DNA of 64,000 nucleotides from Zygnema circumcarinatum SAG 698-1b (taxonomy: Eukaryota; Plantae; Zygnematophyceae): positions 2,666,001 to 2,730,000 of the forward strand of contig CM074811.1 of NCBI GenBank assembly GCA_037447605.1, read 5' to 3'. The position numbers and the translations under genes are program-made. Positions 20,001-64,000 of this stretch are shown piece after piece. Under the pieces are notes generated by a model that worked only from the letters and a program-made list of their open reading frames with translations, was not told the DNA's origin and ran no database searches. Numbering within the stretch: the stretch's first letter is position 1; the number at the start of each line of letters is the position of its first letter.

Positions 20001-23000
20001 TTTTTTTTTCGCACAAGCCTGTTGGAATCGTTAAGTCTAGGTAGGCTAGTTTGAGGTTGCGTCGTGTTCACTTACACCTGTTTTCGGAGTTTTCTTCGTG
20101 CTCTGTCAGTCATATAAAACCTATGGGCATTGGCAACGCGGTCTGTTAAAATGTCCGTACAAACAAAGCTTGGTTCATCGGCTCTCGACAGGATGTCAGT
20201 CAATCAGTTTTCTTTTGAAATCTGTATATGAGTCTAACTACAAATGCTTGCGGGAGGACGAAAGGATTATATCTGTCAGAAGGCAGTCAGTCTCCCATTA
20301 ATGACCTTTGAATGCGTAATTGCAGCAAGAGCAAAAACAAGATTCTCAGCTGTATCGTCAGCAGCAGGCACTGCAGCAAGCGCAGCAAGCTGCGGCACAG
20401 TTGCGTAGTGTTGCTGCTGTTCCTTCTGCAGCTTCTGCTGCCACAAGGTATGTTCCATTCTCTGTAAGCAATTTGATCGTGGCATACATCACCGCTCCCT
20501 CTTTTCCCCCCTTTCATATTTTTCAAGGCAAAGACCTTCCACCCTATAAAAATGCCCGCTAGGATTCCATGGCGTGCGAACTATATTACCTTATTTGTTC
20601 CCATCGTGATCTTTCCTTCTCTTGGAATTCGAAAGCTTCAAAGTTTTGGAAAGCTTCAAAGTTTTGGAAAGCTTCAAAGTTTTGAAAAGCTATGGCCTAT
20701 CTGTTAAGGCGTAGCTTTGGCTGGATGTTTCTGCAGAGTCCTTAGCCAGCAAGAGTACACTGGCAGAAGTAGTGGAGCAGGAGCAGAATATGCAGGACGA
20801 GGGCAAGGGGCCCAAGGAGGCTCATATTCCCTGACCCAATCCACCCGAGCAGTTGGTTTTCCGCCGGGCACTGTATATGGAGCTGCTGCAGTTGCGGCAG
20901 CTCAGCAGCAAGTGGCTCACTATGCAGCTGCGTCGCGATCTGTAGGGGTGACTTTGGCACAGCAGGCAGCAGCCCTCAGTGCAGGGCGCGGCTTGGGAGC
21001 GATGGCTTTTGTTCAGCAGCAACCGCAACAAGTAACTTTTGCAGGAGCCACTGGAGGTCTGTGTATGCGCCTGATCGACTAAGCCTCTGCATTTTTGTCA
21101 GAATTCACTAGCTGATGAGGAATCCATTGAGATATACATGGCCGGCTTACGTCTGTTGTTTGGGACATCCAGGAGACTTGTTTTTAGCATTTTTTGCATT
21201 GGTCCATGTCTGGAAATGTGAAACCCAGAATGTAAACCTGTGTCTGCTTCCCTGTTCTCCATTTTTTCTTGGCTTCACCAAGAAGTTGAAAGCCTTCGCA
21301 TCTAAACCTACCCGAAGCCTAACCTAACCCTAGCCCTGACCTTAACTCTAACCCTTACACTGACACTACCCATGACCCTAACCATGACCCTAACCCTAAC
21401 TCTAACCCTAGCCCTAACCCTAACCCAAACCCTAACCCTAACCCTAACCCTAACCCTAACCCTAACCCTAACCCTAACCCTAACCTTCAACCCTAACCCT
21501 AACCGTAACCCTAACCTTAACCCTAACCCTAACCCTAACCCTAACTTTAACCCTAACCCTAACCCTAACCCTAACCCTAACCCTAACCCTAACCCTAACC
21601 CTAACCCTAACCCTAACCCTAACCGTAACCCTAACCCAAACCCTAACCCTAACCCTAATCCTAACTCTCAACTCTAAGCCTATCCCCTAACCCTAACCTT
21701 AACCCTAACCCTAACCCTAACCTTAACCCTAACCCTAACCCTAACCTTAACCCTAACCCTAACCCTAACCCTAACCCTAACCTTAATCCTAACCCTAGCC
21801 CTAACCCTAACCTTAACCCTAACTCAATCCTCACCCTGGTATATAACCCTGTCTACTTTGTGCATGCATTAAAGTTCACTTTCACTCGACTACTGCAGGT
21901 TTTGGAACAATGGGTGGCCGTGACTACACTGCAGGAAGGCTAGGTGGCGGGCCTGTACAGAGAGACATTGGTTTTTCAGGGACTCGGTCAGCCGACCGTG
22001 GTGCCCCTTCTCGTGGTTTTGATGATCGTCGAGATGATCGGCCGTCCTATCGACGGGATGCGGACCGCGGCCGTGAGGAAGATCGGAAGAGAGAGCGGTT
22101 TGACTCGCGGGATAAAGATCGCCATCCAGAGCGCGACCGAGACCGAGACCGCGACCGCGACCGCGACCGTGACCGTGATCGCGACCGCGACCGAAGTAGA
22201 GATGAAGAACGCAGAAGGGAAAGGGGAGAGGGCAGGGAAAGTCGTGATCGTAAAGAAGAGCCGCATAGTAAGCGAGAGGATCGCAGCAAGCAAGACTTCT
22301 CTCCTGCAGCAAAGCGTGAGATTAAGTGAGTATTCTAGTTCACTGCTTTTGGCTGACTCATGATTGATTTGGCTGATGTTTGCAAGTAAGACAACGGTAA
22401 CCTTTTGTCCGTGACTATTCTTTCAGCTTGTCGCTGACGTAGCCAACGGCCCATAGATGTGTTGTTGGTCGACGACGTGAATTTTTTTTTCTATAAAGAG
22501 ATCATAATGAGCTATTATGGTTACGTAGATTTTCGCTGTAAGTACAGTTTAATGCAGCGTGGGGTGTCTTTCTCGAAAAATTCATTGACGCTCATTTTTA
22601 AAAGTCCTTTGGGGGTCTGTGATGCTACAGACATTCACCGTCACGTGAACTTCGCCGACCTTATACATGCAAGGTAAATCTGCATGTCTAGGACCTTGTT
22701 CCTCTCTTAATAATATATTTTGGTTGCTATTCCACTTGCACACAACAAGCAGCTAGATATTTGAATAGTGTCAACGTCACAACTAAGGATATTGCTGCTG
22801 ATGATTGATTGTCTTACCGGCGTTCTTTTTGAAGTCATTTTCTGCCAATTCTTGCTTTTAAACTTCCCAGACGTATTGAACATTGTAATCGTTGATTGAG
22901 GATGAATAGTTCTGTTGATCAGAGAAGGCAAGAAAATTATTCCAGAAATTATTCCATTATTCTCATTGAAATAACAGCGTCTTTCGTTCTCTAAAGTGAT

Positions 23001-41939: not shown

Positions 41940-44900
41940 TTACGCCAAGCCCTTCACAAACTTTTCAAGTTCAACCACAGAGATATCGGAGCCATCCTGA
42001 GCTGCAACAAGGACTTTTTGTGTGACGTTTACAAACAGTCCTGCACCAACCAAAAAGCCCATATCAGAAAGGTACATCTCTTTATGGCTCATTGAAGTGC
42101 TGGTTAGGTCTACCTGGCTACCAAAGTTGTCTTACACAGGTTTGTTTTAAAATCCGGAACTAGTAAAATGTGCAGAAAATAATGCAATATAGACATGGCC
42201 CACAAATGATTTGAAGTTGCTACATGCCATTGATCCAGAGCCATAATCATCTAACTGGGGAGAAAGTTGTCCAAAAAAGAAACGTTCCTCCTATGCACGA
42301 CGATGAAAGGGAAACAACACATTCAATACCATGCTGCACATAGAATGATTGTGACCCTTTGCGTGATATGAGAGACATTTGTTAAACGAGCACACTAAGC
42401 TTTGCATAGCACACCATTCTCAACGACGCCGGGGATGTTATTGATTGCCTTCTCCATCGCAGCAGGATCCTCAATGCCATTAGGAAACCTGCAAAGTGAG
42501 CAGCACCAGCACAAGGTAAGGCCCAACAATGGAAATAATGTGCCTCATCTGCCGTATCCACTGGCAGAAAGATAACATGGTATTTGTCGACTGCTACAAA
42601 GGTGAACTCCAATAGGACCTTTCTTGTCAGGCGAAAAAAGCAACCTGCCAAATCGGATGCATCCAGCAAGCTTCAATAGGAAGAAAATGTATAAGAGTTC
42701 TGAATTTCATTAAAATCTGCCAAATGTGGTGTTCTACTATATCTAGCTTGAGGTAGAAGAACGAAACCCCTGCATTTTCCCACCTGACATCCACAATCAT
42801 GTTTCCCAGATCGGTCATTACAGGGCCGTCTTTTCTCAAAGCGCTTCTAATCTCCGGAGCTGCGATTACCAACCACATTCCCCTTTCGACCATGTCAATT
42901 CCAACCACAGCAATTAAAAAACTGCAGGGAGTGGAGCGCCAGAGGAAATGGAGCGAGCAAAATTGGAGGACGCACGGATTACCGCTAGCCTGTTATCTAG
43001 GCGAGTGCAAATGTCAAGAAAAAAATCGTTGATTCAGAAACGTGGGGCTTAGACGGACGTACCGCCTCCCAGTGCAACGAGACTCCTCAAGACTGGAGAT
43101 ATAGCTGGCGGCAACACCTCAACCTGCCAGACCAATCATGAAGACCACATCAACCTTAGCATTTCACATCCACAGTCGAAAGTGTCACACTTGTAGGGGT
43201 GGAGTGTTGCGTTGATTCCATATCAGTGATGCTACTGATGATTGGATGGGAAATGCTGACTCACTGGAAGTGGAAAGGTTGTACCGAGCTTTGCCACCAC
43301 TTTGGACTGGTCAACAATAATGATAGTTTCCTTTGCCATTGTGTCAACCACCTGAGTTGACAAATAAAAATTCCAATGCATTTGGGGTAGCAACATAAGA
43401 AGAAATGATTGAACGGGCGAGATTATATGTTGTAATTGCGAGAATCACGAAACAATACGAGAATGACATTAAATCAAAGGACGAAAATAGCCAACAAAAC
43501 AGCTTTAACGGCCAATGTAAAGAGGAAAAAGGGTAGGAGGCCTAGCAGTCGCTTCAGCACATGCTCACCTTTTCCAGAGTATGCGCTGCCCCTCCTCCCT
43601 ACAAAAATGAATGTCAACAAAAGTTGACAGGTCCATGAGGAGAGTTCATGAAGTAATATCTTTTTTAATTATGAAAGTCATGCAATAGACTGAACGAGTG
43701 AAAACTAACAGTCAAGAGAATTAAGTCTCAAAGTTTCCTTCTCAGCATAGTTATCATTATTATAATCTTGTATGACCAGCTGCAATGTGAATACGCTATC
43801 TATCACGGCAAATTTTTAAACGGCCCATTCTTCACCTTGATGAGGTTCATCTGAGCATCCACTTCATCCGCTCCATCAATAGCAATATCGATATGATTCA
43901 CATCGTTTAAATCAACCTGCGTAGGAACATGTTTCCGTGAGAACTCCATTAGAAGCAGACTGCTATTATGACTGCTATCGATACTATTGACAAACGAGCA
44001 AGCAGTTCATGCAAGGATCAAGCAACTGATCAGGACACAAAAAAGTAGATCCTCCGTACCGTCTTCACACCAAACTGACGAGCCAGAATCCGAGCTTGAA
44101 AACTAGTCACAACTGCCACCACGTCCCTCAACTGCGCAGAAAAAAAATAACTGCGATACATGAACAACAGCTCATGGATATTGAAAGGTCGATGGTGATC
44201 TTTGTCCATAATGGGAGATTTTTTTCCAAAGTTTAAAAAAAACATGAAAAAAGGCGCAAAAAAAAAATCCCTTCGAAGTAGAGGAAAGCTAAAGATAAAC
44301 AACGCGGCCCCCGAAGAGAATCGTAAAACGGACATTGGGCTCCACATTGACACTTTTCAGCACAACTTTGTCCCTTTCTTCCGTTATATGTCAAAACTGG
44401 CATGAGTGACCGAACTGCAAAAAGCAAGCACCGTAAACGTTGCACACATGTGCGGTCTATCAGTGAAGAACACATAAAGCTAACGAGATCTGCAGCTCTA
44501 GTGGGAAACATAATTTATTCTATACCTCACCTTCAGCTTGCCTAGCTCTTCAATAGCCATGCAGGCAGTGCTTCCTGTGCCAAGTCCGACAATGTTGCCA
44601 GGCTTCACCAAGGACACCGCCTTCTTGGCAGCTGCTCGCTTTAACGATTCTTGCAGCTGAGGATCAATCCCTGATGACAATCCGGTCCGGAAAAAAAGAT
44701 GCGAATGTAAGTTGAACAAGCGCTACAAAGTCCTCCAGGCATGTCTACACTAGCAGGTTTAATTCTTTAGCGATATGAAGTGAGAAAGAAGCAAGAGTTT
44801 GAACTGACGATACATCGCTAAAACACAGAAAGAACGACACTAGCATTGATACTATGCCCTGGCCTACTGAAATCCTCTACGAGACATATAACTTACTGGT

Positions 44901-45104
44901 TGCTGCAGCTTCCTGCGCCAGGCTCGACGTACAAGCTGTGCGGCCGTTTCTTCTTCCAACCTTGCCGGTCGCAGCTAAGGAGACATTCAACTTCACCTTC
45001 TGGGTGCCAACAAATGCTAGATGCGCTGCTTCCTTGTCTGAGATGCTGCTAGACAAGCCGCGCATGCTGACCGCGTTCGAGCAATGCTGCACAAGAGTCG
45101 CCAT
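41940..45104 (-). CDS. RPI: Ribose-5-phosphate isomerase A, plastid-targeted
   Basis: S/A/R-rich transit-like exon 1 (MATLVQHCSNAVSMRGLSSS). Motifs: LKRAAAKKAV...GLGTGSTA, TSFQARILARQFG, IDIAIDGADEVD...LIK|GGGAAHTLEK, IIVDQSK, LP|VEVLP, GPVMTDLGNMIVDV, IPGVVEN|GLF. Stop TAA 41942-41940. Confidence 0.95.
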
Positions 45105-45317
45105 TGTCACGACCTTCACTCGCTGAAGCTCTCAACTCCCTCCCTCAAAGCTAATCAGAACACCTCCTCTCCTCTCCTGGCGGCCTCTCCTCCCCCCTCC
45201 TCGTCTGCCAAAGAACCAGCAAGAGCACGGCAGGAGCAAGCAGGCCTGCAAAACCCTCCAAACTCTTGGAACCCTCCGAACTTTCTTCCAAGGGCTTGGG
45301 CTGCTCCAAGATTCGCC

Positions 45318-46331: not shown

Positions 46332-49300
46332 TCACAGCCCAGTTCCGCCAAAGAAGTTGTGATGATATCCTGAGACCCAAGGGAGAGTTTTCTTCTGCCT
46401 CGAAATAATCTTGAAGGACTCCTCAGCCTCCACCTGTTTTCGAGGATCTCCTTTTGCATAGACGGATGCCCTATCAGGATGAAAAGTGAGCAGCGCCTTC
46501 TTGTATGCTGCTTGCACCTGCACATACAGAAAACAAGGAGCATACATCATCTGATTTCTGCAGATACAATGTATCTGTCCTCTCCGCTGCAGTAAAAGAT
46601 GTTCACACAGGAGACAATCCGAGGACCATTCCAACAACATGACCAGCCGGCTGAGAAGGGTAACCGCAGTCCCGCCATACCTGAGGGCCTGTAGGGTTGC
46701 CAGCACCGTCAATGGGGATACCCAGTCTTTGCAGCAAGGAGGCCATGTCATAGCAGCTTTTACACACGTGCTCCAAATGGGCACGAATCTGGCCACGAAC
46801 TTGCTCCTTACGCCCCATATTCCACTCCTCCTGTTCACCCCATCGTTGCACAGCCGACATGAGAACTGTTTGCTATGGAGAAAACAAATGGTTTATCCTG
46901 ATACCTGACTCATTTCCCAAGACCATCGTAAGGACAATTGAAGACACCGTTCCCCAGACGCAATGAATGATGAAATGTAGTAGTAATTCAATTAACAAAT
47001 TTGATAGCCACACCGACCATAAGCTCCACTAGCCAGACTTCGACCATGCCCTTATAAAAATCATGAGGCTTGGAAGACATTGGCGCTCTGACAGCTCTGG
47101 ATGAAACAGGCTGGTGAAACACTTTTACATCCATTACCATTCTCAGGATCTGATGAGTCACTTTAAAGGATACAATGAAAATGCTCGTAAATCAGTTTAT
47201 GAACACACAGGCCTTCTGCAACACACCCTTTTTGATAAAAAAAACCTACTACAAGGTAAAAAATGCCCAAAGGTAGCCTCAATTCTGCATCCACCTTCGC
47301 TATTCAATGGTTCGGTGGCTCTTCAACGGAGAGAAAGAGCAAGCTTGTAAAGCGAACGTGCGCATTTGTATAGACTTCTAAAGACTCTTTTACGTTCCTT
47401 GATGTGAAGAGCACACCATCATACATATTCAAGTATTATCATACGGCAATTGCATTTAAACTTCACGTTGCTGAAATTTGCACGTTTTGAACTATTCCTC
47501 ATTTTCGCCTCCAAAATCTTCCTACATTCGAGCAATCCTTTAAAATTCGTTAAATACTGTGGCCTGCCTCAAAAACTGCATAAATGATGTCTCCAACTTC
47601 CAGTTTACTTACAGTTGGAATGTCTATTTGCTTAACTATTGACCACACACAAACCACTGGGTTTTGCTGCTTCCATGAAGCATGCTGTCAGCGTACAATC
47701 TGGTCCACACCTCAGACATGTTCAGTTCCTTGTTTGGCTCTTATGGAAGGAAGGTATGTGACTCCCCTACATGACGCTTAACATTACTGGTCCTGCTCTT
47801 GACCAAATAATAACGACCATTTGCAATGACTGAAAACATAGTACTGATAGTACTTGCAAATTTGCATGAGATGAATGGTAAAACGAAAGATTCAATTGTA
47901 ACAGTCGCTTCAATAAATATAATTGCAACAATCACTTCGACGATGTATGGTGTTTTCGAACTGCTATCGCAACGGCATATGCATGAGGGACTTTTCACTG
48001 ACCAGATATTGTTAAATATCGAAACATCAATAAGTCAGGGCTCATAGGGTGAGACATCACTCCGTATGGATCACAGATTGAGATCATGCAAACCCCCAGA
48101 CGCACCTGCTGCTGCTTTTCCCTCATTTCTTCCAGTCGTTGGCGCTGTCTACTCTCCATTTCTGCTTTGCGTTCGCCTTCTGCTCGTTTGCGCTTTCGAA
48201 GCCGTTGAACCTCCAATGCCTGCAACACTTAGGTCTTACCCAATGGTGAGCAGTGTGCAATATTGCATGACACGCTCAAACATCTCTGAATACTCTTGCT
48301 GATTGACCCTTGGCCCGTCATGCAGGACAATTGCCGAAGCAGGATAATCACTAGATTTAGCTTGACTGCTGATTGTTTTCCGAAGCCGTTGCTTGCTGAA
48401 CAAACAACGTGCATGCGACATCGAAAGCTCTGTAATGCTGCAGGACTAAAATCCCACATTCAACAGCAAGTCCTGTACTAGCAAAATAAGGACTTTGGTA
48501 ATCAAATATCGTAGACTTCAATACAGTACTCCAACCAGTGTTTTGCCTGCAAAGGCATAAGAGAGAAGGCATCAACTACCAACCTGACGTTGCAGCTCTT
48601 GCTGTCTCTGTATCCACTCCTCCTGATCTGCTTGCTGAAACTCAACACTTTCCTTCATGCGCTCCCTCTCGCCAATCAAACGGTCGTCCGGAGTTCCCAC
48701 TCTTTCAGAGAGGCTATGTGGTTTGGCTCCTTCCGTTGGCACTTGATCAGTCGTACGACCCCCTTCGCTCCCTACCGCTGCTACAGTGCTCATCTCCACA
48801 TCTGAACTTGCCTGAGGGTGCGCACCATCTTCACCAGGTTGTGATTGTGTTGAATGTCCAGCTGCTGGAAAACCTGACATGCAGGCTGTTGCAAAAGAGC
48901 TTACTCTGTCCGATGCAGTGTCTGTTTCGTCATACTGATCCCGTCGCAATGCCGTGCTGTAATTCGCATGCACTCTATCGGGAGTTTCAGGTATTCCTGA
49001 TACAACCCCCTTTCCTTTTACGCCAAACACTGACGACTCCATCGGTTGACCACCTGTGTCAGAACTGCCAAAAACGCAGAATCTTGGCAAAATAGGAGTT
49101 TCCACTCCCTTACCATTCTTCCGTACAGTTGCAGGTGAAGAATCCCTTAATCCGAGCTTTGAGAAATCCTCCGCGTCAGCTACATTAACATTCAAACCAG
49201 CTGCTTGTCCACCGTCTGTATGCCTACTACTCTGACTTGTACTTGTCTTAAGTCCAGTCCCCTTCCCAGAAAAACGGCTGCCTTCATGAGGCGAACTCCA

Positions 49301-50821
49301 TACTCCGTCGTTTTCATTAGTTGAAGCCTGGGCGTCCTTCACAGGTGGAGACTCTCTTGACTGGTTTCGTCCATTGATTGTAGAGGAATCAACTGGACTT
49401 CCTTGCTTTTTTCTTTGAGCCACTCGTTTGCGCAATGCTGCTTCCTCCCATTTCTGGCGTACCTCCTCCTGAATTGCTTCATCAGCCTCAACATCGGAAT
49501 CCTCAGAGACAACTGCTTCGTTTTTTGGAACCTTATTATGTGTATCGACTGCCCCTTTTCCAACTGCACGAGAAGGATCGGCCTCACTACCCTGAGACTG
49601 CTTTGGGTCTAAAATTTCCACATCATCATCTGTGCTTGATCCCCCTTCAGATTCAGACGCCTCATTTTCATTCTCCTCATTACTATAGTCGGAGTCAGAA
49701 GAGGAAAGCCTCCCCGAATAGTTGGTCGTACAGTTAGTTCTTCCACTATCCTTAGGAACGTCGTCATCATCATCATCCAAAATAACCACTATTGGAGGTT
49801 CAACACCAAGTGAGGACCTTTTCTTTAGCAAATGTCCACCCTGCAAATGAGCATGATGGTCTTCCTCTGAAAATTTCGTAGATGCTGCTTTCGCTGACCT
49901 ACTCTCAGGCCGACTCCCTTCTGCAGCAAAACCAAAGTCATAAGAGGCCAGCACCAACTCAGAATGCAGATGATCAATAACCAACAGATGCATGTGCGCG
50001 CCCCCTTTACTATGCATATACTGCCTCCAACTCCTATGAAAACTATGCTTAGCCATGCCATCTGTGACATAAACGATCCATTGGCTCAAAAAAATAAATA
50101 TTCACGATTACGCACTGTTATGGTTACAGAAGTGAACGTCATTCTAAGTTTCGTACAAACTTAAAGAAAGAGTCAAACCTTGTTTATTACTTGTAATTAG
50201 TATAGGCAGTCTATGGAATAGCCAATGACCTGCCCAAATGGCTATGGCGTTACTGCACTGAGAAAGAACAGCAAATCCCATACGACACACCAACGTGAAT
50301 GGTGCCGCATACGATGTACTGATGTAAGAGGTACGTAACCACGGATATTTACAAAATGCATGTGGAATCCTAAAAAGGATTAAAGTATTAACCCGTTCTT
50401 CCATCTAATGTGTTCTGAATTTTTTAACTCTGGTTGTCCAAAAGGTGCTACAGGGTAAGTCATTTCCCTACCCGTGCTTCTGCATACAATTGGGGCCCGA
50501 GTAGGCATTGGAGTGCCAACACATACCTGCACTTGGGCATTCGGACTGAAAATGCCCTAGCTCTCCACAACTAGAGCACGTTTTGATCGTTCTTCCACCA
50601 GGGTTCCGTGCAGGATCTCCATTTTTGCAGCCCTCATACATTGGCCTACTGCAGGCACGAGCCCGATGACCTGGCTGCCCACAATCGTAACAGATGTTAC
50701 TTCCTCCCCGAGCTCCTCCACCGACACCCCCCCTGCCCCGGTCATATGGGTGCTGCCCATGGGCAAGGGGGGGCCTTGACCGCCCAGAGAATTGAGCAAC
50801 CCCGCAGGTTCTGCTGTCCAT
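46332..50821 (-). CDS. Protein with two N-terminal CCHC zinc knuckles, acidic disordered middle, coiled coil and C-terminal truncated J-domain-like (HPD) region
   Basis: complement(join(46332..46517,46681..46830,48106..48219,48584..49920,50527..50821)), phases consistent. Motifs: CYDCGQPGHRARAC and CSSCGELGHFQSEC; LIGERERMKESVEFQQADQEEWIQRQQELQRQ|ALEVQRLRKRKRAE; DMASLLQRLGI; VQAAYKKALLTFHPDRAS...QVEAEESFKII. This matches my recollection of a plant family of DnaJ-like uncharacterised proteins. Confidence 0.82.
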
Positions 50822-53800
50822 TCTAAAATCCGTGGCTTCCCACCAAGATTAATTTTAAAGTGACTCCATTGCCTGCGCCCACGCATTGTCAACAAAATAA
50901 ATCGTTGGAAAAAGACAGTGTAAATAAGAAGTGTCCCTCCATAAAAACTGCACACTAAGGACAGGCTTTACTGAGGATGCCTTCTTGTTCCTAGCCTATA
51001 CCTCTGCTCTCTCTCTCCCTCCTCACTCTCTCTCGTTCAACCTTTCTCCCTCCCTTACTCGCTCCTTCCCTCTCCTGCCATGTCAGCTGTCAAAACGTAC
51101 AACCAAACGTTCGATTCCTTTCGTAACTTCTTCCCCCTATTTCAAGTACATCATGACCGCAAGTTCCCTTCACGACCAGCCATAGTCCTTACCTCCATCA
51201 ACCCGCCCACAAGCTTTCCAGCTTGCACTCCAGATGCCTCCCCAGTGCCTGAAAGAAAATCTTTCTCAACTGAAAACTTAACAAACGGCTGCATCCTCAC
51301 AAGCACAGAGAAGCGCGCGCGTCCAGACGCTGCGCTTCCCTCTCTCCTCCCTCGCCTCTCCCTCTCCCTCTCCCTCTCCCTCTCCCTCTCCCCTCTCCCC
51401 TCTCCCGCCGTCCACCGCTCGCCTCCCTCTCCTCCCTCCCGACTTTCCGCGATGCTCCTAACGCACGCTCCTGCTCGGTTCGCCCTTCGCTCAAAACGGT
51501 AGAAAAGAATTCGGAGAGCTACTTCAAATCAGATTTCGTACTCTCTACAAAACTGAAAAGCCGCTTTGAAGAACATTTCTTTCGGTTTGACGTCTTCTTC
51601 GCCCGAATTTTCTTTGTCCTTCCGTACAATCGAATTCAGTATTCGAAATTCGCTGAATATGGGATTCATGAATTCAGAATTCGCCCGGCCGGAAATTCGT
51701 TGATGAATTTTGTTCAAGACACATAGTGCGACGTACGAAGTCGCTAGAAAGTCGCACTAAGGGATATTGTCTCGCGCTATGATCGTTCTGCACATTTGAA
51801 CAAAATTCAGTAACGAAATTCCAGCCGAGCGAATCCTGAAATCCCAAAATTCGGCGAATTTTCGCATACCGTACTGAATTCGACTGGTTCCCGCAGTTGA
51901 GGCGCACGCGAGAAAAACGAAAGACGTACTCTTTGAAGCGGCTGCCAACGGGAACGTTTAGTGAAGAGTACGAACTCTGATTTGGAGAGACTCTCCGGAT
52001 TCTTTGTACAGAGGGCGCGGGCGGAAGGAAGTAGGGTCGTTTGTTTGAGCGTTTTGGAAGGGGGGGAGGAGAGAGGCGGGCGGGGGCANNNNNNNNNNGG
52101 GAGGGGGAGGGGGAGGGAGAGGGAGCAGAGAGGGAAGCGCAGCGTCTGGACGCGCGCTTCTCTATGCTTGGATGCAGGATGCAGCCGTCTGTTAAGTTTT
52201 CAGTTGAGAAAGATTTTCTTTCAGGCACTGGGGATGCATCTGGAGTGCAAGCTGGAAAGCTTGTCGGCGGGTTGATGGAGGTAAGGACTATGGCTGGTCG
52301 TGAAGGGAACTCACGGTCATGATGTACTTGAAATAGGGGGAGGAAGTTGCAAATGGAATCAAACGCTTGGTTGTACGTTTTGACAACTGGCATGCGGGAG
52401 AGGGAAGGAGCGAGGAAGAGTGGGAGAAAGATTGACCGAGAGAGTGTGAGGGGGAGAGAGAGCAGAGGCATAGGCTACGAACAGGGAGGCATTTCGCTGT
52501 AAAGCCTGTCCTTAGTATGCAGTTTCTGTGGAGGGACCCTGCTTATGTATACTGTTTTTTTCGAACGAATTATTTTGTTGCAAGTGCGATAACGTTTAGC
52601 AATTTTGTCCTCCGCTATATTAAGGGATTAGTTTGTTCTATATGCTTGGGCACCTTGATAAGTGATGCTGTTTGCAATCAAGCTGCAATCATTTTAGATT
52701 GACTTTATTGGCTACAGTTCTCGTACCATCTGCCAAGGGTCGAGGAAATGTGCTGCTGTCGAATTTGACCATGTTCTGCCTATTCTCCCTATTGTTCACC
52801 TGTGTTACTTGAACGCCCTCTGGTGATCCTCTTCCTTTTTTACTTTGATTCACATTTGCATTTTCACGTCCAATTTTCCGTTGTAGATCATGACACTCTG
52901 CGGTTCAATGGACCCAGCAGTGGGTAACTGAAACCTCTTGGGCAAGTCTTTCAGTTATAACAGCAGACCTATTTTATGTGTGGGCGCAGGCAATAGAGTC
53001 ACTTTTAAAGTAATTTTGGGTGGAAAGCCTCGGATTTTAGAATGGACAGCCGAACCTGCGGGGGTGCCCAATTCTTTGGGCGGTCAAGGCCCCCTCTTGG
53101 CCATGGGCAGCACCCATATGACCGGGGCAGGGGGGGTGTCGGTGGAGGAGCTCGGGGAGGGAGTAACATCTGCTACAATTGTGGGCAGCCGGGTCATTGG
53201 GCTCGTGACTGCAGAAGACCAATATATGAGGGCTGTAGAAATGGAGGTCCTGCAAGGGACCCTGGTGGAAGAACTATTAAAACATGCTTTACTTGCGGAG
53301 GGCTATGGCATTTTCAGTCCGAATGTCCCAGTGCAGGTATGTGTTTGCACTCCAATGCCTGCTCGAACCCCTATTGTATGTAGGAGCTCGGGTAGGGAAA
53401 TGACTGACACTGTAGCACCTTTGGGACAATCACAGCAGAGTTCAACGATTTAGAACCCATGGGATAGAAGGAAGGGTTCATGCTTAAATCCTTGTCAGGA
53501 TTCCACATGCATTTTTAAAATATCTGTACACCTTACCTCAGTACATCGTATGCGGCACCATGCACGTTCATGCAGTATGGGATTTCCTGTCCATTCTCAG
53601 TGCAGTAACGCCACAACAATCTGGACAGGTCGTAGGCTAATTCATAGACTGTTTATATTCATTGCAGGTTAGAACCAGAGTCTTTCCTTTTTTTCAAGTT
53701 TGTACGAAACCTAAGCAATTAGTCTAACAAGCGCATAATCGTGAGTCTTCAAATTTTGGAGCCAATCGATGAGTAATGTCACCGATGGCATGGCTTAGTT

Positions 53801-53909
53801 TCCATAGAAATTGGACGCAGTACATGCATAGTAAAGGAGGTGCCCACACAGTTGTTTGGTTATTGATCATCTAGATTATGAGGTGATGCTGGCCTTCGTA
53901 AGATTTTGG
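49932..53909. repeat. Large imperfect inverted duplication (arms ~49932-51717 and ~51796-53909; 78-bp spacer)
   Basis: Reverse-complement matches were traced by eye along the arms. Examples: 51631-51717 vs 51796-51882; 51500-51590 vs 51915-52010; 50890-51345 vs 52125-52585; zinc-knuckle exons 50527-50821 vs 53042-53336; intron 49932-50520 vs 53340-53909. The right arm has about 390 extra bp (~52586-52978). Confidence 0.95.
52089..52098. other. Assembly gap (10 N)
   Basis: Run of N at the position homologous to the (CTCTCC)n tract at ~51340-51400 of the left arm. Confidence 0.99.
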
Positions 53910-56900
53910 ACCAAGCGATAAGTGTTTCCAATGCCTTCCATGTCGCTCGAATCAACACAATTTTCAGAAGTGTTAAGTGAAAGACGACTCTTGCACATTC
54001 ATCAAAATGAAAAAACTTTAGGTTAAGTACTCATGCATGATTGGTTAGGTTTTTATATTGTATAATTAAAGACAGGTTGAATGACCGAGAGAATACTCAA
54101 GCGTCACGTACGTGGTGCTCACAAGCAAAATCATGGTTCAGTATTCCTTGGACTCAGAAATTTATTAGATGAAAGGGTTTTGCTAGCTCGGTTATTGATC
54201 TCTCTTGATGTGTTAGAGGAGTCGCTTCATTCTTGTATCTGTTCAGGTGCGGAAGGCCAGGATAAGCAGCCAATTTTCGTAGACTCTTTACCTGAAGATC
54301 CATTCTCAAGCCATGCCAATGAGCGTAAGGCATTATGGCCGAGTGAGAGAACTGGCAACTTCTTTCATCCAATGAGTGTGGCAGATCCCCAGTTCTATCC
54401 TTTACCCAGTGCGCCGAAAACATCAGCCATGCCCATTTTTGGTGATGGTCAGTATGTTTTGAAGGGGCCTGGCATGCCCTATCCAAGCTTGCCGCATGAT
54501 CGTCCACCGTGGGCGCCTGAACCTTGGGTTAATGGGGAGAGAGTTATGGCCAAGGAAGTCCTGGAATCCCAGATGGAATGTGTTGTGCCATCACCTAGGC
54601 GTTCCGTCATGTGGACAGCTGACCCGTGGAACATTGGAGCCAATAATAAAGAGGGCTCAGGTTGTTCAATAGGAGCTCATGTGCCACCTGAAATCAGTTT
54701 TCAGACAAGCAGTGCAGGCTGGACGGACCCGTGGGCCAATTGTGGCAGAGATATGGCCAAGGACGGCTCGATCCCTCAAACCTTATGGGGCCCCCCTGGA
54801 GGTGCATCATTGGGTTTCTCTCTATCTGCACCATTTCCCAACCTCTTACCAGACGGTAGCTTGTTTAATCCTTCAGAAAGAAGTAACCCTGTGCAAGATG
54901 TGCAGAACGATGACATCGTGGGAAAGACTAACGACGAGACAAGTGAAAAAGACTGTGATGAGGATGTCTTTGGATTAACGATCGATGACCGAGTCGAGCA
55001 GCTTATGGCAGGATTCGAGTTAATTCTTGGCAAGGAGAAAGAGGTTGTATTTGGTGAGTGGTAGTGGGGTCCATTATGGTACAGTGGTTGAGTTAGACTA
55101 GCTCGCTCTATCTCCATGTTTGCATTTCATGGATACCATTTTTTGTTTGTTCGTGGCACTATTGCTTATGTTAGCAGAATATTCCTGCCTTTCATACCTC
55201 CATGTTTCCATTATTTGTATGTAACTCAACTGTGATTGCCGTCATAGTCATGCTAGGAACTCCACTTTCTGCCCCTGTTGTGTACTGTGGGTTTTTCTTA
55301 AGGCGTACCTTAACATGTGATAGGAAAGACAAGTTTTTCTTTGGAAGTTGTTGACAAAATTTATATCTTTACGGTTTCTTGGCTAATTGCTAGTTGCAAA
55401 TGACGTTGCAGAGGCTTTACGGACTGCGTCAAGACGTGTAAACCAAGAGTTTGAGCTTGGACTCGCTTCTGAAGGTGAGTGTAGGCAACTCCGAACGCAA
55501 ACGATTGAAACTGCCATGTGTGCTCTTTCCTTTCCGGCGATTAAGTTCTGAAGTGTGTTTAGACTGGAGCCACCATTGTCTGATGAGACAGTTCACAGTG
55601 TCGGAAGGGCCTTCAATGCATGCTGTTATCTGACGTGTGTTTTGATCCATGGTTGCAGACTCGCCTCAAAGTCATGGGGCCTTTGGAGAGTATGGTGAGC
55701 CATGGAGAGTCCTATCTGATCTTAGCGGAGAGGAGGCAGGAGTTAACCAGGAGCGAGGATCTGGAGGGAAACAAGATGAAGAAAAAAATGAGGCTAGTGA
55801 AAAGGAACCTGCGCTGGAAGTTAGCAAGGAGCTTGCCAATGTCGATGCACATAGCTTAGGACCAGAGAGTCAAGGATTTCTAGATTCTTCAAAAATGCTT
55901 GTCTACCCTAAGGAAGAGGGTGCCTTTATGGAAGAGACTGGAGAGCTCTGGAAATGGCCATTACGAGGAGGGGATTGGAAACTTGAGGGTGATCCCTTTC
56001 TTTTTCATGCTCCTTCTGATAAGCCAAGGCTCGAGGCAAGAAAGGTGGTTCTCAGTGGAGGCAGACACCTCTGGGAAATACGAGCATCAACTGAGGCTAG
56101 TGATCCTCGTATCCAGGCTGCAAAAGGGGAAGCTGTGTCGCGTGTAGAAAACGATTTAAGAATCAAGAGTTCTGAAGATTTTATGGACAGTAAGAGCATT
56201 GTTCTGTTGGAGCTACCCGCATTTGCATCCAGTGACGAAGGGAAATCAGTGCCGAAGAAAATTGGGGCGGCTAGTGAGAAGGGAACAGGAAATCTTGCTT
56301 CTGCGGGTGTAGGTGGGACTGCCGGGCCTTTGATTTCCGTCGTATCAGACATCACCTCAGAGGCAAGTGCACAGTCTCATGCATCCGCAGCTCTGCTTCA
56401 AGCAGTCTCCCCTTCTCTTACTCAAGGGTCTGGAAGAACCCGAATCAGCGCAAGCATTGCTAATGTGAATTTACCGAGTGCTGTGAGTTCTGATGTGAAG
56501 ACAGCAAAATGTCTTGGTACCGTAAAGGCAACATCAGTAAAAGGTATGGGGAAGACGGAGGGAAGAGAAAAAGTAGAGGAGAGGGAAAAAGGGCCAGCCA
56601 CGGTTAATGGGCGAGTGTCGTCAAGTAAAGAAAATGGCATTGCCAAGAAAGCAAGCATAGTGGGAAAGGCTAGTTTGGAAGTGGTGCCTCTAAACACAGA
56701 AAATGCAATCGAGAAAGAAACTCTTATGGTTCGAAAAAGAAATGCCACTATTGTTAGGCAGTATGGGCTCGTGAATTATTGTAGGGAAGATGAGACAAAG
56801 ACAGGTCAAGCAATCAAAGCGGTTGGGAAGTCGGAAGGGGTCAGGAGGAAAGAATCGTCAGCTGGTCTCACTGAAAATACTCGTGTTGCGGGCTCTTACA

Positions 56901-59900
56901 ATTGGTCGGATTGGGATCCTGTGAGCTCAAGTTCGGATGAAGAAGGAGGAGGGGATGGGCCCTGGGATGTTCCACTTCCTGTGAACAAGAGAAGTTTGAT
57001 AGAAGAGCCAATTGCAGAGATGAACGGAGGACTCCTGAGCAAAGAGAATACGGATGATGCTGCGATAAAGAGTGGCAAGAAATTGCCCGAAGGAGGCCAG
57101 GAAGGAGCCCATACAGGTTTTGACTCTGCCGGAGGCTTTCAGAAAGACAATTCTTTTGGTGTTCACCAGCGTGTAAAGTCTCCTCAGACTGCAGATCCAC
57201 TTTCTGTGGTGAAAGTGGTGTCAGATCGAAGCGTCATCCAGTCTCAAGTCGATACGACAACAACCCTTCGAGCTTCAGTTACTCTTGATCCTTCCAATAC
57301 ATCTGACAGTGCTCTGTTATCTGCAGAGATAAAATCCGTGGCTCCTCCTTGTAATTCTAGTCATGACATCACTTACTCAGTAGACAGTAGACAGGAGGCT
57401 TCAAAGAAATTACCCGAGCAGGTTGTATCAAACCCTTTTGGACCTGGTAGCTCCTTGGTGACTGCAAAGGGAGAACGTCCTTGCAGGCCCATCCATGAAG
57501 GGGAGTGGTTCTACCAAGACGGGATGGGAAAGGAGCAAGGCGGGTGCCTCTTGTCGAGACTGCAGTGGCTAGTAAAAACAGGACAGTTAGTTGAAGGATC
57601 TAGTGTGTATCGGCGAGAGGATGCTTTGTGGTTGCCAATCACTTCACTGATGTCTCCGCTCTCGTTCGAGCCGGCTGCCATGCAAATAGACTTTCCTGTG
57701 ATGCATGGTCAAGCATCCACTTCAGGGACAGGGCCATATTCTGATGCTGCTTCAAATGAAGTCGCACCAAACCTTCTCGGCCCTCCAGTGTTGTTCTTGC
57801 CAAAGCTTCTGAACTTCAGCCTCCCCGCTTTGGGGGCAAAGCCGGCCTCGAAGCTTCTCCTGGAATCGGAATCGAATAAGCCCACAGTAGTACAGGAATC
57901 GGCGAATACTCCTCCAGTGGAATCACCGTGTGCACAGAACCCAGATGAACTCGCCGGTCTATCGACCTGCTCTGGCAAAGAAACAGAAGCTGAGGGATTT
58001 GCGATTATTCAGGAAAATCCTCTGAACTGTTCTTCATTAGTAGATAATGTTGTTGTTCAGGACAGTTTGCTGCAAAAGGCAGAAGTTCAAGAGGTGCTGG
58101 CTAACTGTTTCGTCCCTGTTCTGCCGAGAACTGAAGATTCCTGCAATCCCTGTGGAGAACACGTATTGGTGCAGGCAGCAGGTAACCAGCTTGTCCTATG
58201 CCAGGAGATTTGCAGTAGTAAGCAGTTAGCAACTGAATATAATGTAGAGCATGAAATAGCGGGTAGCTGTGACAGATCGCAGAGTAGCCCCAGCCTCATG
58301 GCATTTGTTCGGGGCAAATTGTTTGAAGTTGCCATGGCGGATTACAGAGCAAAAATCTTGCAAGCATTGTTGGTTGACATTTTAAAGTGCCCAGTGAAGC
58401 CCAAGGAGAGTGAAGGTGAACTTCAGGGCAGTGAGGAGGTTGATGATCAGATGATACCTGGGGAAGAAGATCGTGTAGAAGTCAGACTTCGTGAATCGAA
58501 CCAAGCGGAGGGGCAGATGAATTTGGATGGTCAGCCGAATCAAGTGAAAGAGACGGATGCAGCAAAAGCGGACGATTTTGAGTCTGAAAAACCAAAAGTG
58601 GAGGGCCATGTGGTGGTGGATCCCCAAACGCCAACCAAAAAAACAACTGAAGTTGAAGACATCCCCCATCTAGATACAACACCGGCAGACAATGGAACAG
58701 AGGAATTTAAGGTCCATAGGAGGCAGCCTAAAAGTGATGTCTACTTAAATAGCGAGGGACAGGGCTTGGAAGCGGTGCAGGGGTTGAAGGATCAGTCTAG
58801 CAAAGAAGTGGAGTTTAGTAAATCTGAAAGCTCGTCACAGTCAAGAAAAAGGCCTCTTCTGGGTAAAATAGAGATTGGAACGACACCTCAGCGTCGACGG
58901 CTTGTTGTTGACAGTGATTCGGATGAGGACAGTTTGCCCCTCCGTCTACCTGCACATTCTCCTCGCCAGACCATCCCTAGTGAGGGACCCCTGGATAAGA
59001 AGTCATTAGTCTGCCAGATGGGGAGAACATTGGCGACTCCATCGACGTCTTCTGAGAATGGTGCTGTTTCTGATTCTATGGAGTCAACGGTGGCTGAGGG
59101 ATGGCCTGAAGACAGGGCTCATAAAGTAGGCAAGAAAAAGGTTGCCGCTGTCACTCCTGTATTAGGTAGGTCGGACAGTTCGTACAAAGGCTGTGAATCG
59201 TTCGATGTATTGGAAGGTGTTGGGAGGCCACCTGCCATTGCGAGTGAAGATGTCGGAGTCCGAGCACCGTGGGAGTCCATGGAGGCAGGACTTTTAAATC
59301 TGATATTCTGTTATTTGAAGGAGGATGCAATGGCTCTTGCAAGTATTGGGGCAGTCTGCAGGGCATGGAGGGGATGTGGGTTGCAATGGAGACAACAAGC
59401 GACGAAATTGGACCTCAAGTGGTTGGGCAATCGTTGCTCTGGAACAACTGTTGAGGCACTCCTTGCACAGGTGAGCTGGGTGTATTTTTTATCTTGTCCC
59501 ATTTGAAAGAATCTATCAGTGCTGACCTGCCGGTGTATCCTTGAGCAATCCAAGGGCTTCTGCTTCGATCTAATGAGTTGCGTAAATTTGTCGAAAGGTT
59601 TTCAGTAATGTAAAGATTGTAGTGAAGATGCTTTCGAGTATCTGTGTTCAGTGCACTGGTCTGCTATTTACGCATGCATCATCGTGTGTTGCAGGGGTAC
59701 GGTTGTAACTCTTTGGAGCGCATCTCTTTAGACAATTGTACCGACCTTACCCAAGAAACGATGCAGAGATTTCTCGCATGTCGTCCCTCAGTTCTGTTCG
59801 TAGAAGTCACTGAATCTGAACAAATGAAGGAAGTTGCACCCCTGTTCCCCAAGGTGCAATTCGTATGGAGTCATCCTTTCCTCGATGCCTTAAAACCTGA

Positions 59901-62900
59901 TGTGGAAATGGGAAGTGGCAGTGCTGCTAGAACAGCGGGATGGAAAGATTATCCGCAGAGCAGTGGAGAGCCAAAATCTTCCGGAGATAGCAGAGCCAAA
60001 AGCAGAGTTATACCTTCAACAAAATCAGACGGTTCTGTTAGGGGCCCTGCAGGAGCTTCTCCACTAGGAAGCGCAGCGGAGAAAGGAGGTTCACATTTCA
60101 CAACTTCAAAGGCAGCTGGACGACCTTCCACACCAGGAATAGAGGTTGAGCAACGAGTGTTGAAAGGGAAGGCTGAAGGAGCTGCATTGGCACGGACGAC
60201 ATCAGGGACTGCATCATGGAGTATGGGTGGTGGAGGATGGGGGGCAGGGGTGCCCTCAAAGTCGAGGCAAGGAGAGGATACAGTGTCGAAACCTCTTTTG
60301 AAGGGGAAGGGCAATGAAGCAGGGAAGTCAGGAGGAGGCTTTGTGAAAGTGACGGGGGGAGGACAGCTCAAGGGAGGAGAGATGGGAAGCAGACCTCATT
60401 TAGGTTCTAAAAAATTTACAGTGGAGCGTCTTTTGGAGCGAGAAATAGGGGAGGCGATAAAAAAGCTGCTGGAATGGGACAAGAACAAGTTCTTTACACA
60501 GCCGGTAGGTCAACTGCTCTGGATGGCCACTGCTAACAGTAACTGGTAGTTAGCATGTTTTATCCTTGAGCCTGTTTTGTCTCATTTCTGTCAGCTCTGT
60601 TCACTTTTTCCAGCATCAAATTGTTGGTTTTCTTTAATTTACTCTCCTTTTCAACATGGTATTAGTTTAGCCCTGCAGAAGCTGGCTAATGGCAGATTGA
60701 AAATCATGGCCGCTGAAGACCATTGATTGATATTATTGATTGCATTCTCAAGTCTAATTCCTTGTGATGAAAGGCCACGGAATCTTAACAGAGGTAACAA
60801 CATGGCCAAAAAGTCAATTGATTTTAGTTTTTAGAGCATGTACTAGATCACCTGTAGTGGGGGTGTATATGTATGGACACTCGGAATCTGCCATTAGGGG
60901 AGTACGAGTATCTCGACAAGGGCAGATTTCAGCTTAGATATTGCTTAAAGCAATTATTGTGTGGGTAGGCATCAGGCCTCCTACAGCTAGCTGTAAGGGA
61001 GGGGAAACCACTCTATCCGATCGGTGTGATAGAAAGCATCAGTTCTAATGTTGGAGGACGCTTGTCTAATGTTGAAGCGTTTATTTGTCCATCAAGAGTC
61101 GATTCTGCTCCCTCCAATACTCAAATAGTGGAACTATTAGACGGCACGTTTTATTGCCAGTAGATATCTCGGTAGTTCTCACTTTACACACCTGTCACCA
61201 CCTTTCAATCTCATCCTTGTACCTTTAGTTTGATTTGCATTTGTTTTCAACAGTCTTAGAAGTAGGTTTTATGTTGCTGAAATGCCTCTTACATTTTTTT
61301 TCAAGGTGGTAACCAACTGGTGAATGAAAACAACGGATGCGTTACACTTCGAATTGCTCATTCCAGTCAGAAAGCTGATCTGTTTGCAAGACGGGAGGTT
61401 TTATGCAGATGTCCGCCGGGTTATTCCCAACATATGAACAGCGCTGCCGACAGAAGGTAGATCTTTCAACGCTGCAAAGGAAATTGCGTGACGGTGAATA
61501 CAGCAATGCGAGTGGTCTCAACGAGGGTCTGTACCCTCCAACAAATGGACTATACGCCTTCGACAATGATGTGAAGCTCATTGGACGGAATGCCTTCCTG
61601 TATGTTGCTGTTTCTCACTCTATTTACTACAAACTTTGTTCTTGCAAACAGGAGTTTGGAGGCAGTTGGTTGAATTTTTGTATGCAGACTGTGACTGAGA
61701 TCATAAGTGAGATGCAGCGTGTCCCAGCCCACCGAAATGGGCAGATAACCAGTTTCTGCTTGTTCCGTTCCTTTTGTGCAATAAAAAAAGTTGACTTAGC
61801 ATGTACGTGTACTCTTCATAGCGTGTCCGTCCACAGCGTGTCAAGTCAATTTTTTCCAGTAAAACCTTCTGAGAACCGTCTGATTGATTACTAAGGTCAT
61901 ACCTTGGATAGTTACTGTATGAGGAAACACTGGGTGCAGATCCGAATTTTAAGAATTCTGATGTGACTGCTTCAAAAATCACTTCACTTCCCATATATCT
62001 GATACTAACTTCTCCTTGATCAGTTAGAAGCGAGTTATTGACAAGCATTATATATCTTCTGCGATAGTTCATTATGCAGATGCCATGTAGTAAGGTCTGG
62101 GAACCTGCTCGTTGGATTATAATAAAGGACATGGTGACAGATGTATGATTCTACCGGCTGGGTTTTGTTCTGAACGCAGCTATTTCGAGGAAAAGGGACC
62201 CATTTACAAAGCTGGTCAAGGTCTGTTCAAACTCGGCTCTAAGCTTGTGGAAAACATTAAGGCCAACATTTTGAAGCAGCTACATGCTTCGGCGAAGCTG
62301 TATGGCGGAGTTCTGACAAGTAAAGCCAAGGGGAAGCGCATAGCGAACAATGTGGCTAGGAAACCGGTTGCGAAAAAGAGAGAGAGAGAGGAGGATTTCA
62401 AGGGACGAGCTGAGAAGAAGAAGCGGGATGAGCTCGATGACGAAAGTGATTTGGACAGCGATGCTGAGAGTGAGGAGATTCTCGATGATGGAGAAGATAG
62501 TGTTAGGGGTGGGTCAGCCAAGAAGGGTGCAAAATCTCGGAATGTATGGTCTGAGTCTGAAGGGGAAGAGAGCGAGGAAGATGGGACAGACTTGGACATT
62601 TATGAGGTGAGTGGGACCGTATTCATTTGCGCAACTACCGCCATTTCGTGGACCTTTTTTGTCAGAAGTTGATGGTGGAAAATGCCGATTCTTTATACAG
62701 GGCACCCTTGATGCCCATTGTTTGGGGCCCAATTCGTCAGAAAGTGTTTGTGATTCTCTTCCATGCTAACTAACTAATCCTTCAGCATGTCTCCCTTGTT
62801 GCTTCTTGTTAACCTGCTTTCGCCTTGTACTTGCATCCTCAATCATTTCGGGATCTTTAGGAAAAAATAGGTCGTATTGCGGCAATAGTCATTCTAGCAA

Positions 62901-64000
62901 CATATTCTGACCCTGTCCCTCTTTTGGCATCTGCATTCAGTATCCTGAGCATGTGCTTGAACAACCCCATGAGTCCGCTAGCAATAACATTAAGGCTCAT
63001 GAAGAGGATGAAGAAGATGGGGACGAAGAAGAGGTGGAGCAGGAGGGATGGACCAAAAGGCCTAAAGTATACAAGGAGAAGATGCGTCTTTGGGGGAATC
63101 GTATGACGAAGGCGGCTATGGTCCCACCAATTACTCGTGTATATGAAACAATTGAAAACTATGTCATTGTGGAAGACAAAGAAAGGGTGGAGAGAAAGCT
63201 TGTAGTGGAGCTTCCAGACAACCTTGAGGCAAAGACGAAACGAGCCAAGGATGATGGTTTCACTCAGGTAAACAGACCCAAATGCGATGGCGGGAGATTT
63301 TCTTCAAACGGCTGAATTCAATAGCATGGGTCTTGGATCTGCATACACAACTGTTGCTGTCTTAGTGATGTGTACTGAGTCCTTCTTGGTTTCTCCGTTC
63401 AATTATCCGTCGTATTGCGATCTCGGCAACCAATGAGCTGTTTGATGTATGCAACGGCAGTTAAAGCAGGATAGTTACCTTTTGCTTTGGTTTGCATGGT
63501 TTTAGTTGGCTTTATATACTCAGATAGTTAAATGCCACATGCATGTGGCATAGGGTCCAGTCCTTCCATTCGATAAAGTATATATGTATTGAAAGATATA
63601 TTAAGTGTATGCTTCAGGAGCACAAACGAGTTAAAAGCAGGATCTGTCCCTTTGAAATGCTTCGGATTTTGGATTTTGTGTTATAAAACTTCAAACTCTG
63701 CACTCCCTCCTGCTGCTGAAGCCCTGGTTATCCTTCTGCCTTCTCCCTTTGTTTTGAGCAGGGCATCCATTTAGACTGGCCAGATGTGAAACCTGCAAGC
63801 AGACGGCAGGAAGTGAATATTGACGTGGTGGAGCAGGAGGTGTACGGCATCGACCCTTGCACACATAACCAGCTTTTGGACTCCATGCGTGAGCAGTGGC
63901 ATAGAAGGGGCCCTTCTGAAACTCGGCCAAGGACTGATCCCCCTCCGAGTCTCAAGGAGGATGAGGAGCATGCATTCATCGAAGAGGTATGGGCTGCTCT
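53042..64000 (+). CDS. ATXR3: Histone H3K4 methyltransferase ATXR3/SDG2-like, 5' part (SET domain lies beyond the window)
   Basis: Exons ~53042..53336, 54247..55053, 55411..55473, 55659..59470, 59695..60504, 61409..61599, 62180..62606, ~62941..63267, ~63761..63986. ATXR3 hallmarks: LTIDDRVEQLMAGFELILGKE, GYF-like GEWFYQDGMGKEQG...SSVYRREDALWLPI, F-box-like PWESMEAGLLNLIFCYL...CRAW, WGNRMTKAAMVPPITRVYETIENYVIV, VVEQEVYGIDPCTHNQLLDSM...HAFIEE. Confidence 0.92.

Follow-up and report, generated by a model that had tools for sequence, protein, structure and literature searches.

A diverged palindrome links a J-like gene and ATXR3/SDG2 through homologous, mirror-image 5' ends in Zygnema circumcarinatum

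Bidirectional promoters of head-to-head genes are known, and Drosophila Sdic is an example of a chimeric gene duplicate. Such duplicates arise by partial DNA-mediated duplication, in which an in-frame fusion produces a mosaic, expressed open reading frame (ORF) (PMC3449122), while fold-back inverted duplications carry as their signature a short spacer and adjoining deletions or translocations (PMC3907307). Here, we describe a locus related to all three in a stretch of 64,000 nucleotides (the window) from the alga Zygnema circumcarinatum SAG 698-1b (contig CM074811.1, positions 2,666,001 to 2,730,000), where a diverged palindrome at 49932-53909 lies between two unrelated, divergent genes, one encoding a J-like protein and the other ATXR3/SDG2, a member of the histone H3 lysine 4 (H3K4) methyltransferase family. 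It is likely that a fold-back inverted duplication with an adjoining deletion made the chimeric J-like gene together with a mirror-symmetric bidirectional promoter. The palindrome, the splicing, the polarity of the copying and the constraint on the paired exons follow from the data, while the fold-back route, the prior adjacency of the two genes and the function of the copied part are inferred.

The locus resembles the described fold-back inverted duplications (PMC3907307) in that an inverted copy abuts its template via a short spacer, here a loop of about 20 nt, with foreign DNA at the far end. Those cases, however, are large, recent and harmful human rearrangements, whereas the present one is about 2 kb, old, and yields an expressed gene. 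As in chimeric duplicates (PMC3449122), one segment of the ORF has its homologue in another, intact parental gene (ATXR3), the rest stems from an unrelated gene that has no zinc knuckle in its own family (58 homologues; loci L012-L014), and the fused J-like transcript is made in frame (joint 49920/50527, three studies; frame check). The difference is that the copy is inverted in place with its promoter head-to-head with that of the donor, and that the recipient rather than the donor was remodelled. The usual bidirectional promoters share with this one a divergent transcript pair issuing from a CpG-rich, untranscribed region of ~600-700 bp, but here each half is the homologous mirror image of the other, and the leader, the upstream ORF and the first coding exon are common by descent. 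Chimeric duplicates (PMC3449122) and fold-back duplications are already known, and the mirror-promoter geometry is an unusual variant of them; what sets the locus apart is that two unrelated genes owe a mirror-image bidirectional promoter, a leader and a first coding exon to common descent. The combination of inverted duplication, chimeric gene and bidirectional promoter was not found in the literature, the coverage of which was incomplete, and the Zygnema genome paper (PMC11096116) does not mention this arrangement.

Self-BLAST, a repeat search and a global alignment agree on the ~4-kb palindrome that a first-pass annotation of the sequence had reported. The inverted self-BLAST matches pair 49932-50886 with 53909-52976 (81% identity) and 50882-52588 with its own reverse (75%), the palindrome being the sole long inverted self-match within the window, and the repeat search resolves it into 15 in-register arm pairs. 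Homology in the global alignment is unbroken from the centre to 49932/53909, except for ~390 nt unique to the leader intron of the right arm (~52582-52975). It stops at 49932, 11 nt short of the acceptor of the left gene, so that the end of homology after ~0.6 kb of intron was placed correctly; an apparent continuation into the J-like exon is attributable to chance, with 112 of 1000 shuffles equally good. The left arm thus holds promoter, exon 1, intron 1, exon 2 and ~600 nt of intron 2, all ATXR3-derived. The features of the locus are as follows.

46332-49920, minus strand: J-like gene body, exons 49920-48584, ~48219-48106, 46830-46681 and 46517-46332
49921-50526, minus strand: chimeric intron of 606 nt, ATXR3-derived except for its last ~11 nt, breakpoint near 49932
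49932-51732, minus strand: left arm, read as an inverted copy derived from the 5' end of ATXR3
50527-50821, minus strand: left first coding part, within exon 2 (50872-50527), N-terminus of the J-like protein
50855-51294, minus strand: left upstream ORF of 39 codons spanning intron 1, ATG at 51294, stop at 50857-50855 (frame check)
50873-51192, minus strand: left intron 1 of 320 nt, without ~390 nt present at right (RNA joint)
51193-51345, minus strand: left exon 1, leader, with its true 5' end inside the GA repeat near 51350-51440 or above it
51439-52035: untranscribed shared bidirectional promoter, zero RNA depth in three runs
51733-51752: palindrome loop of ~20 nt, between 9-bp perfect inner arms 51724-51732 and 51753-51761
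51753-53909, plus strand: right arm, read as the native ATXR3/SDG2 5' end and donor
52089-52098: assembly gap of ten Ns where right exon 1 begins, within a GA microsatellite, non-coding
52127-52280, plus strand: right exon 1, leader, with its 5' end inside the GA repeat or above it
52179-53013, plus strand: right upstream ORF of 41 codons spanning intron 1, 46 codons from the ATG at 52164 (frame check)
52281-52989, plus strand: right intron 1 of 709 nt (RNA joint in X7 and X8)
53042-53336, plus strand: right first coding part, within exon 2 (52990-53336), N-terminus of ATXR3
53337-54246, plus strand: ATXR3 intron 2 of 910 nt (RNA joint in X7, X8 and X20)
54247-64000, plus strand: ATXR3/SDG2 gene body, leaving the window before the SET domain

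Arm identity ranges from 75 to 97% and changes along the palindrome: it is 97% in exon 1, 91% in the first 92 nt of intron 1 and 87% in its remainder, 90% in the coding exon, and drops from 86 to 78% in intron 2. The promoter core is the most diverged segment (75%, with 15 gap openings). The first-pass annotation had proposed mirror-image shared promoters, which stands as a statement of descent and need not imply equal regulation. With ~0.2-0.25 substitutions per site between the arms, the palindrome is old, and it is common to several samples. The central 689 nt fold as DNA (z -13), and the richness of the centre in indels may reflect erosion that stabilised the palindrome. The ~390 nt of intron 1 that the left arm lacks (52582-52975) have a short TGCG/TGTG likeness at both ends, which suggests a microhomology-mediated deletion from the left arm.

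Transcription was followed by mapping RNA-type runs from three studies (X7, X8 and X20) over 49250-55200. These runs are labelled unknown or guessed RNA, and are taken as RNA because intron skipping is seen in them and is absent in the DNA run; their contigs yield no start sites, strand or levels. The joints 49920/50527 (606 nt), 50871/51192 (320 nt) and 53333/54244 (910 nt) were found in all three runs and the joint 52278/52988 (709 nt) in X7 and X8 only. Once the ambiguous cut is placed, all four introns are GT-AG and both coding donors are phase 1. The splice sites and junctions predicted from the sequence, including 50527/49920 and 53336/54247, are therefore borne out, and the RNA joints together with the frame check show that the left knuckle exon is spliced in frame to the J-like gene and the right one to ATXR3/SDG2. 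A joint from 55053 to the following ATXR3 exon was also seen in RNA. The four introns (49921-50526, 50873-51192, 52281-52989 and 53337-54246) also occur as retained or pre-mRNA sequence in X7 and X8, at a depth below that of the spliced joints. The depth of the two genes differs ~1- to 27-fold between runs, a figure that does not rank their expression, since contigs cannot do so. Over 51405-52088 the observed/expected CpG ratio is 1.48, against 0.68 for the window, as would be expected of an unmethylated promoter. The palindrome was also considered as a source of hairpin RNA, which is ruled out by the outward reading of both transcripts and the RNA-free centre.

The polarity of the duplication is indicated by ATXR3 itself. 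Searched exon by exon, as was the left one, the right gene has an IDDRV motif, GYF, F-box-like, LRR-like and bromodomain-like regions and a WGxRMTKA block, with Pfam matches to bromodomain and, at scores below the curated cut-offs, to GYF_ATXR3 and F-box-like. The IDDRV, GYF_ATXR3, F-box-like and WGxRMTKA blocks are those of the ATXR3/SDG2 family in the same order, to which the window gene adds a bromodomain-like insert and, at the N-terminus, an RGG/zinc-knuckle module; a moss-type orthologue has these additions as well. The moss-type loci (L008, L010) were retrieved by a scan with a conserved ATXR3 exon, and the window gene is colinear with moss-type ATXR3, with the GYF_ATXR3, F-box-like and pre-SET blocks in order. 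The moss-type protein begins at Met, then has a QF motif, PFDRGR and a single CCHC knuckle, and continues in order with IDERV, GGDW, GYF, F-box-like, LRR-like, bromodomain-like and WGARMTKA blocks, so that both ATXR3s have in common an N-terminal module of the form MD..QF..P(Y/F)DRGR-knuckle. The right knuckle exon matches moss-type ATXR3 with an E value of 2e-6. As the 30 residues ahead of the knuckle can be aligned without it (shuffle p 1.5e-4 global, 0.006 local), this likeness points to descent rather than to a generic motif. Neither a palindrome nor a J-like gene within 10 kb upstream was found at the moss-type ATXR3 locus. On these comparisons the knuckle module is ancestral to ATXR3, which makes ATXR3 the intact donor and the J-like gene the sole chimera. 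An earlier proposal, in which the inverted duplication created a chimeric gene and gave the module to both proteins, thus holds for the duplication and for the J-like chimera and fails for ATXR3, the knuckle of which is ancestral.

In ATXR3, the bromodomain-like module is split (60421-62280; Pfam E 1.7e-7 for one exon) and is present in the moss-type orthologue as well (L010, ~8870-9230), which makes it ancestral to this ATXR3 clade rather than inserted locally. In neither protein does the site of the usual acetyl-lysine-binding Asn look canonical. Knuckles on ATXR3 were not found reported in the literature, as far as this was covered.

The recipient encodes a predicted chimeric protein of ~693 aa including the knuckle exon (from exon bookkeeping), with an acidic disordered region, a WEEAA motif, a coiled coil and a C-terminal J-like tail with HPD; the three 3' junctions of the gene derive from homology, not from reads. 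Its last exon alone scores 21.4 bits against a Pfam J-domain cut-off of 27.8 and covers 18-53 of the 63 profile positions; the HPD is present. The motifs and the three 3' exon blocks are those of other plant J-like proteins (P0042, P0046, P0006 and P0003), among which the window protein is alone in carrying zinc knuckles and has little N-terminal sequence of its own. A CX2CX4HX4C knuckle was found in none of 58 J-like homologues, including the nearest (P0003, run SRR8128903), and in or around none of three J-like loci (L012-L014, from Physcomitrium, Riccia and a moss type); orthologue comparison therefore assigns the knuckle ancestrally to ATXR3 and not to the J-like family. Between ~150 and 400 residues precede the V(I/V)LDDDD motif in homologues versus ~47 of its own in the window gene, which has thus probably lost its promoter, its start and 100 or more N-terminal residues. 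Separately, a transcript contig from the P0003 sample series (L006:782-2200, P0039) fuses a PARG catalytic domain to a J-like C-terminal tail and is possibly a second chimera of this tail, or else an assembly chimera.

From these observations the following course of events can be proposed. Upstream of the ATXR3 promoter, a break or a stalled fork would have folded back on short inverted homology, after which ~1.8-2.2 kb of the ATXR3/SDG2 5' end would have been copied in reverse and rejoined inside the J-like gene at its large exon, with the intervening DNA deleted and ATXR3 left intact. The short J-like N-terminus suggests that DNA distal to the fold-back was lost in this way. Traces of short inverted homology at the edge of the spacer, and of microhomology at the far junction, would be obscured by the 20% divergence of the arms. 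In a single step the copied promoter, leader, start codon and phase-1 donor would have rescued the J-like gene, the donor splicing in frame to an acceptor that lies 11 nt beyond the breakpoint. A cryptic site adopted beside the copied intron fits this acceptor best, an old J-like intron being possible, as bryophyte homologues have introns there. The copied part would have been kept foremost as promoter, leader and start, while the zinc-folded knuckles may give weak or altered binding of single-stranded RNA and could place the Hsp70-recruiting J-like tail on RNA-protein complexes.

Each of the two 98-codon coding exons holds an RGG stretch and two Pfam zf-CCHC matches (E ~1e-11), as expected of the 295-nt ATG exon with two CX2CX4HX4C knuckles described for each arm. 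The pair differs at 15 silent and 15 replacement sites, with a synonymous divergence (dS) of 0.25, a replacement divergence (dN) of 0.07 and a dN/dS of 0.28 (p 0.001), and there is no indel or stop in 295 nt, with 16 of 16 zinc ligands kept. By this measure of sequence change the two exons, as a pair, are under purifying selection. If the left copy alone were neutral, 21-26 replacements would be expected, against 15 observed across both lineages; with all 15 assigned to the left copy, P is 0.01-0.03 at the synonymous or intron-2 rate. The right copy has G89W in knuckle 2. Matches of the knuckle exon in PDB are to generic retroviral nucleocapsid knuckles and do not demonstrate a retroviral origin, and those in the ESM Atlas are only to generic CCHC clusters, below 0.9. 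No closer relatives of the knuckle exon or the F-box-like region were found in a length-limited search, a blank that carries little weight, and exact look-ups of the window ORFs gave no match.

Both leaders contain a predicted upstream ORF that begins in exon 1 and was overlooked in the first-pass annotation, ending 33 nt short of the main ATG on the left and 28 nt short on the right; the two differ by two replacement changes and one silent change. The leader of moss-type ATXR3 likewise contains an upstream ORF at this place (L010:1684-1860), which has 58 codons and stops 21 nt ahead of the start, though without a significant match to those of the window, so that a conserved peptide is not indicated. 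The Arabidopsis ATXR3 gene is presumably AT4G15180. AT4G15180 has a conserved upstream ORF of 11 residues (PMC6380273). Upstream ORFs thus appear repeatedly in ATXR3 leaders (alga, moss type and Arabidopsis). Over the ~220 nt made up of exon 1 and the opening ~65 nt of intron 1 the arms are 97% alike, silent sites included, which is far above intron 2 (p 4e-8) and reflects either nucleotide-level selection or a recent arm-to-arm conversion tract. The search for structured RNA in exon 1 gave nothing better than shuffles (z -0.74) and no Rfam family matched. A strong GC-rich hairpin is possible in both arms at the 5' end of exon 1 after the GA repeat (52127-52163 and 51309-51345), upstream of the upstream ORF.

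The ten Ns, which sit upstream of all coding sequence, raise the question of whether the arms are truly adjacent. None of the listed records bridges them with unique sequence on both sides, which would leave room for an assembly artefact at the gap; we nevertheless regard this as highly improbable. In a DNA run of a separate study (X3) a single contig (51405-52088) spans the centre and both inner arms, and both of its ends enter the GA repeat, with a loose end that resembles the letters after the Ns. Contigs of 12.9 kb and 16 kb join each outer arm without a break to its own gene, the arms differ by up to 25% with indels, and 96-97% of sampled words are present in six DNA runs from three studies. 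DNA depth is flat at 23-30 along both arms, as for single-copy sequence, with a peak of 75 solely on a 60-nt stretch identical between the arms. The arms are taken to join across the gap because the mirror of the left promoter half must run into a copy of exon 1 and the depth indicates only two. A simple assembly artefact had been considered unlikely from the start, and the contig, the depth and the divergence uphold this. The argument that the gap has the centre and the two inner arms to one side of it is confirmed for the promoter-core arms, whereas the exon arms flank the gap on opposite sides. CCHC knuckles are common in transposons, and the arms might accordingly be seen as the long terminal inverted repeats of an element of Mutator/Pack-MULE or Foldback type from which both genes received exons. 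The same single-copy depth speaks against this view. Moreover, the right arm is native ATXR3 5' sequence rather than a host-foreign repeat, there is no further arm copy in the window, and in place of a target-site duplication of 8-11 bp the longest word shared by the arm ends is 5 nt, a trace that age may have eroded. An origin of this kind is very unlikely, and a high-copy transposon inserted twice, raised earlier as a way in which the arms might have arisen, is contradicted by the flat depth.

The remaining alternatives bear on what was kept and where the copy landed, and it is here that several points weigh against the history proposed above. For the left copy taken by itself, constraint does not reach significance at the slowest neutral rate (P 0.12), and the J-like copy is without W53 and D56 in knuckle 1 and F83 in knuckle 2, among them two aromatic residues. 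Aromatic residues at such positions stack on bases in nucleocapsid knuckles. With these lost, nucleic-acid binding by the J-like knuckles is predicted to be weaker or different. Together with an identical 60-nt run in the coding exons (50703-50762 and 53101-53160) and the ~220-nt tract in the leader, this fits a knuckle that is a mere passenger on the J-like protein, only promoter, leader and start being of use while conversion between the arms keeps the exons alike. We hold this to be possible, if doubtful: synonymous divergence in the exon equals far-intron divergence (both 0.25), so that conversion has not homogenised the whole exon, replacements are 3.6-fold rarer, the reading frame and every zinc ligand are intact, and the centre, nearest the axis, is least conserved. 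A similarly tentative place is given to the joining of the fold-back copy to a distant J-like gene, by inverted duplication with translocation, since fold-backs do occur beside translocations (PMC3907307) and no ATXR3 lies within 10 kb of the J-like gene, nor the converse, at three bryophyte-type loci. Gene order is not expected to persist between algae and bryophytes, though, and a local template switch would take fewer steps. Moreover, no algal ATXR3 N-terminus was found in the length-limited search, the polarity being drawn from one moss-type lineage, and the truncation of the J-like front counts as inferred because the N-terminal region of J-like proteins varies.

Elsewhere in the window, ~530 nt of telomere-like CCCTAA/CCCTAAA repeats lie at 21302-21837 inside an intron of another gene, PAZ/PIWI-like exons in the ORF list mark an Argonaute gene (~1900-10150, minus strand), and a ribose-5-phosphate isomerase-like gene (~42000-45163, minus strand) lies directly downstream of the J-like gene.

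The locus is an unusually clear expressed and selected case of a new gene architecture that would have arisen in one step, with its full footprint still legible, and illustrates a direct route to a bidirectional promoter. The arms form a natural experiment in which one starting promoter, leader and exon serve two different genes, and the features that were conserved (exon 1, zinc ligands) or drifted (promoter core, aromatics) point to the working parts. In practical terms, primers, probes or guides for either 5' end will match both genes. A broader scheme, which we offer only as speculation, would have small, recurrent promoter fold-backs rewire neighbouring genes in this compact algal genome by passing on a promoter, upstream-ORF control and an RNA-binding head, with conversion keeping the leaders alike and the main H3K4 trimethyltransferase and an RNA-tethered J-like co-chaperone being coupled at the same nascent transcripts. 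For the ATXR3 family, an N-terminal RGG/zinc-knuckle and a bromodomain-like module are present outside flowering plants, and Arabidopsis ATXR3 associates with pTEFb and a cap-methyltransferase paralogue (PMC13084085). The RGG/knuckle and bromodomain-like modules are a testable lead on how ATXR3 may locate transcribing genes.

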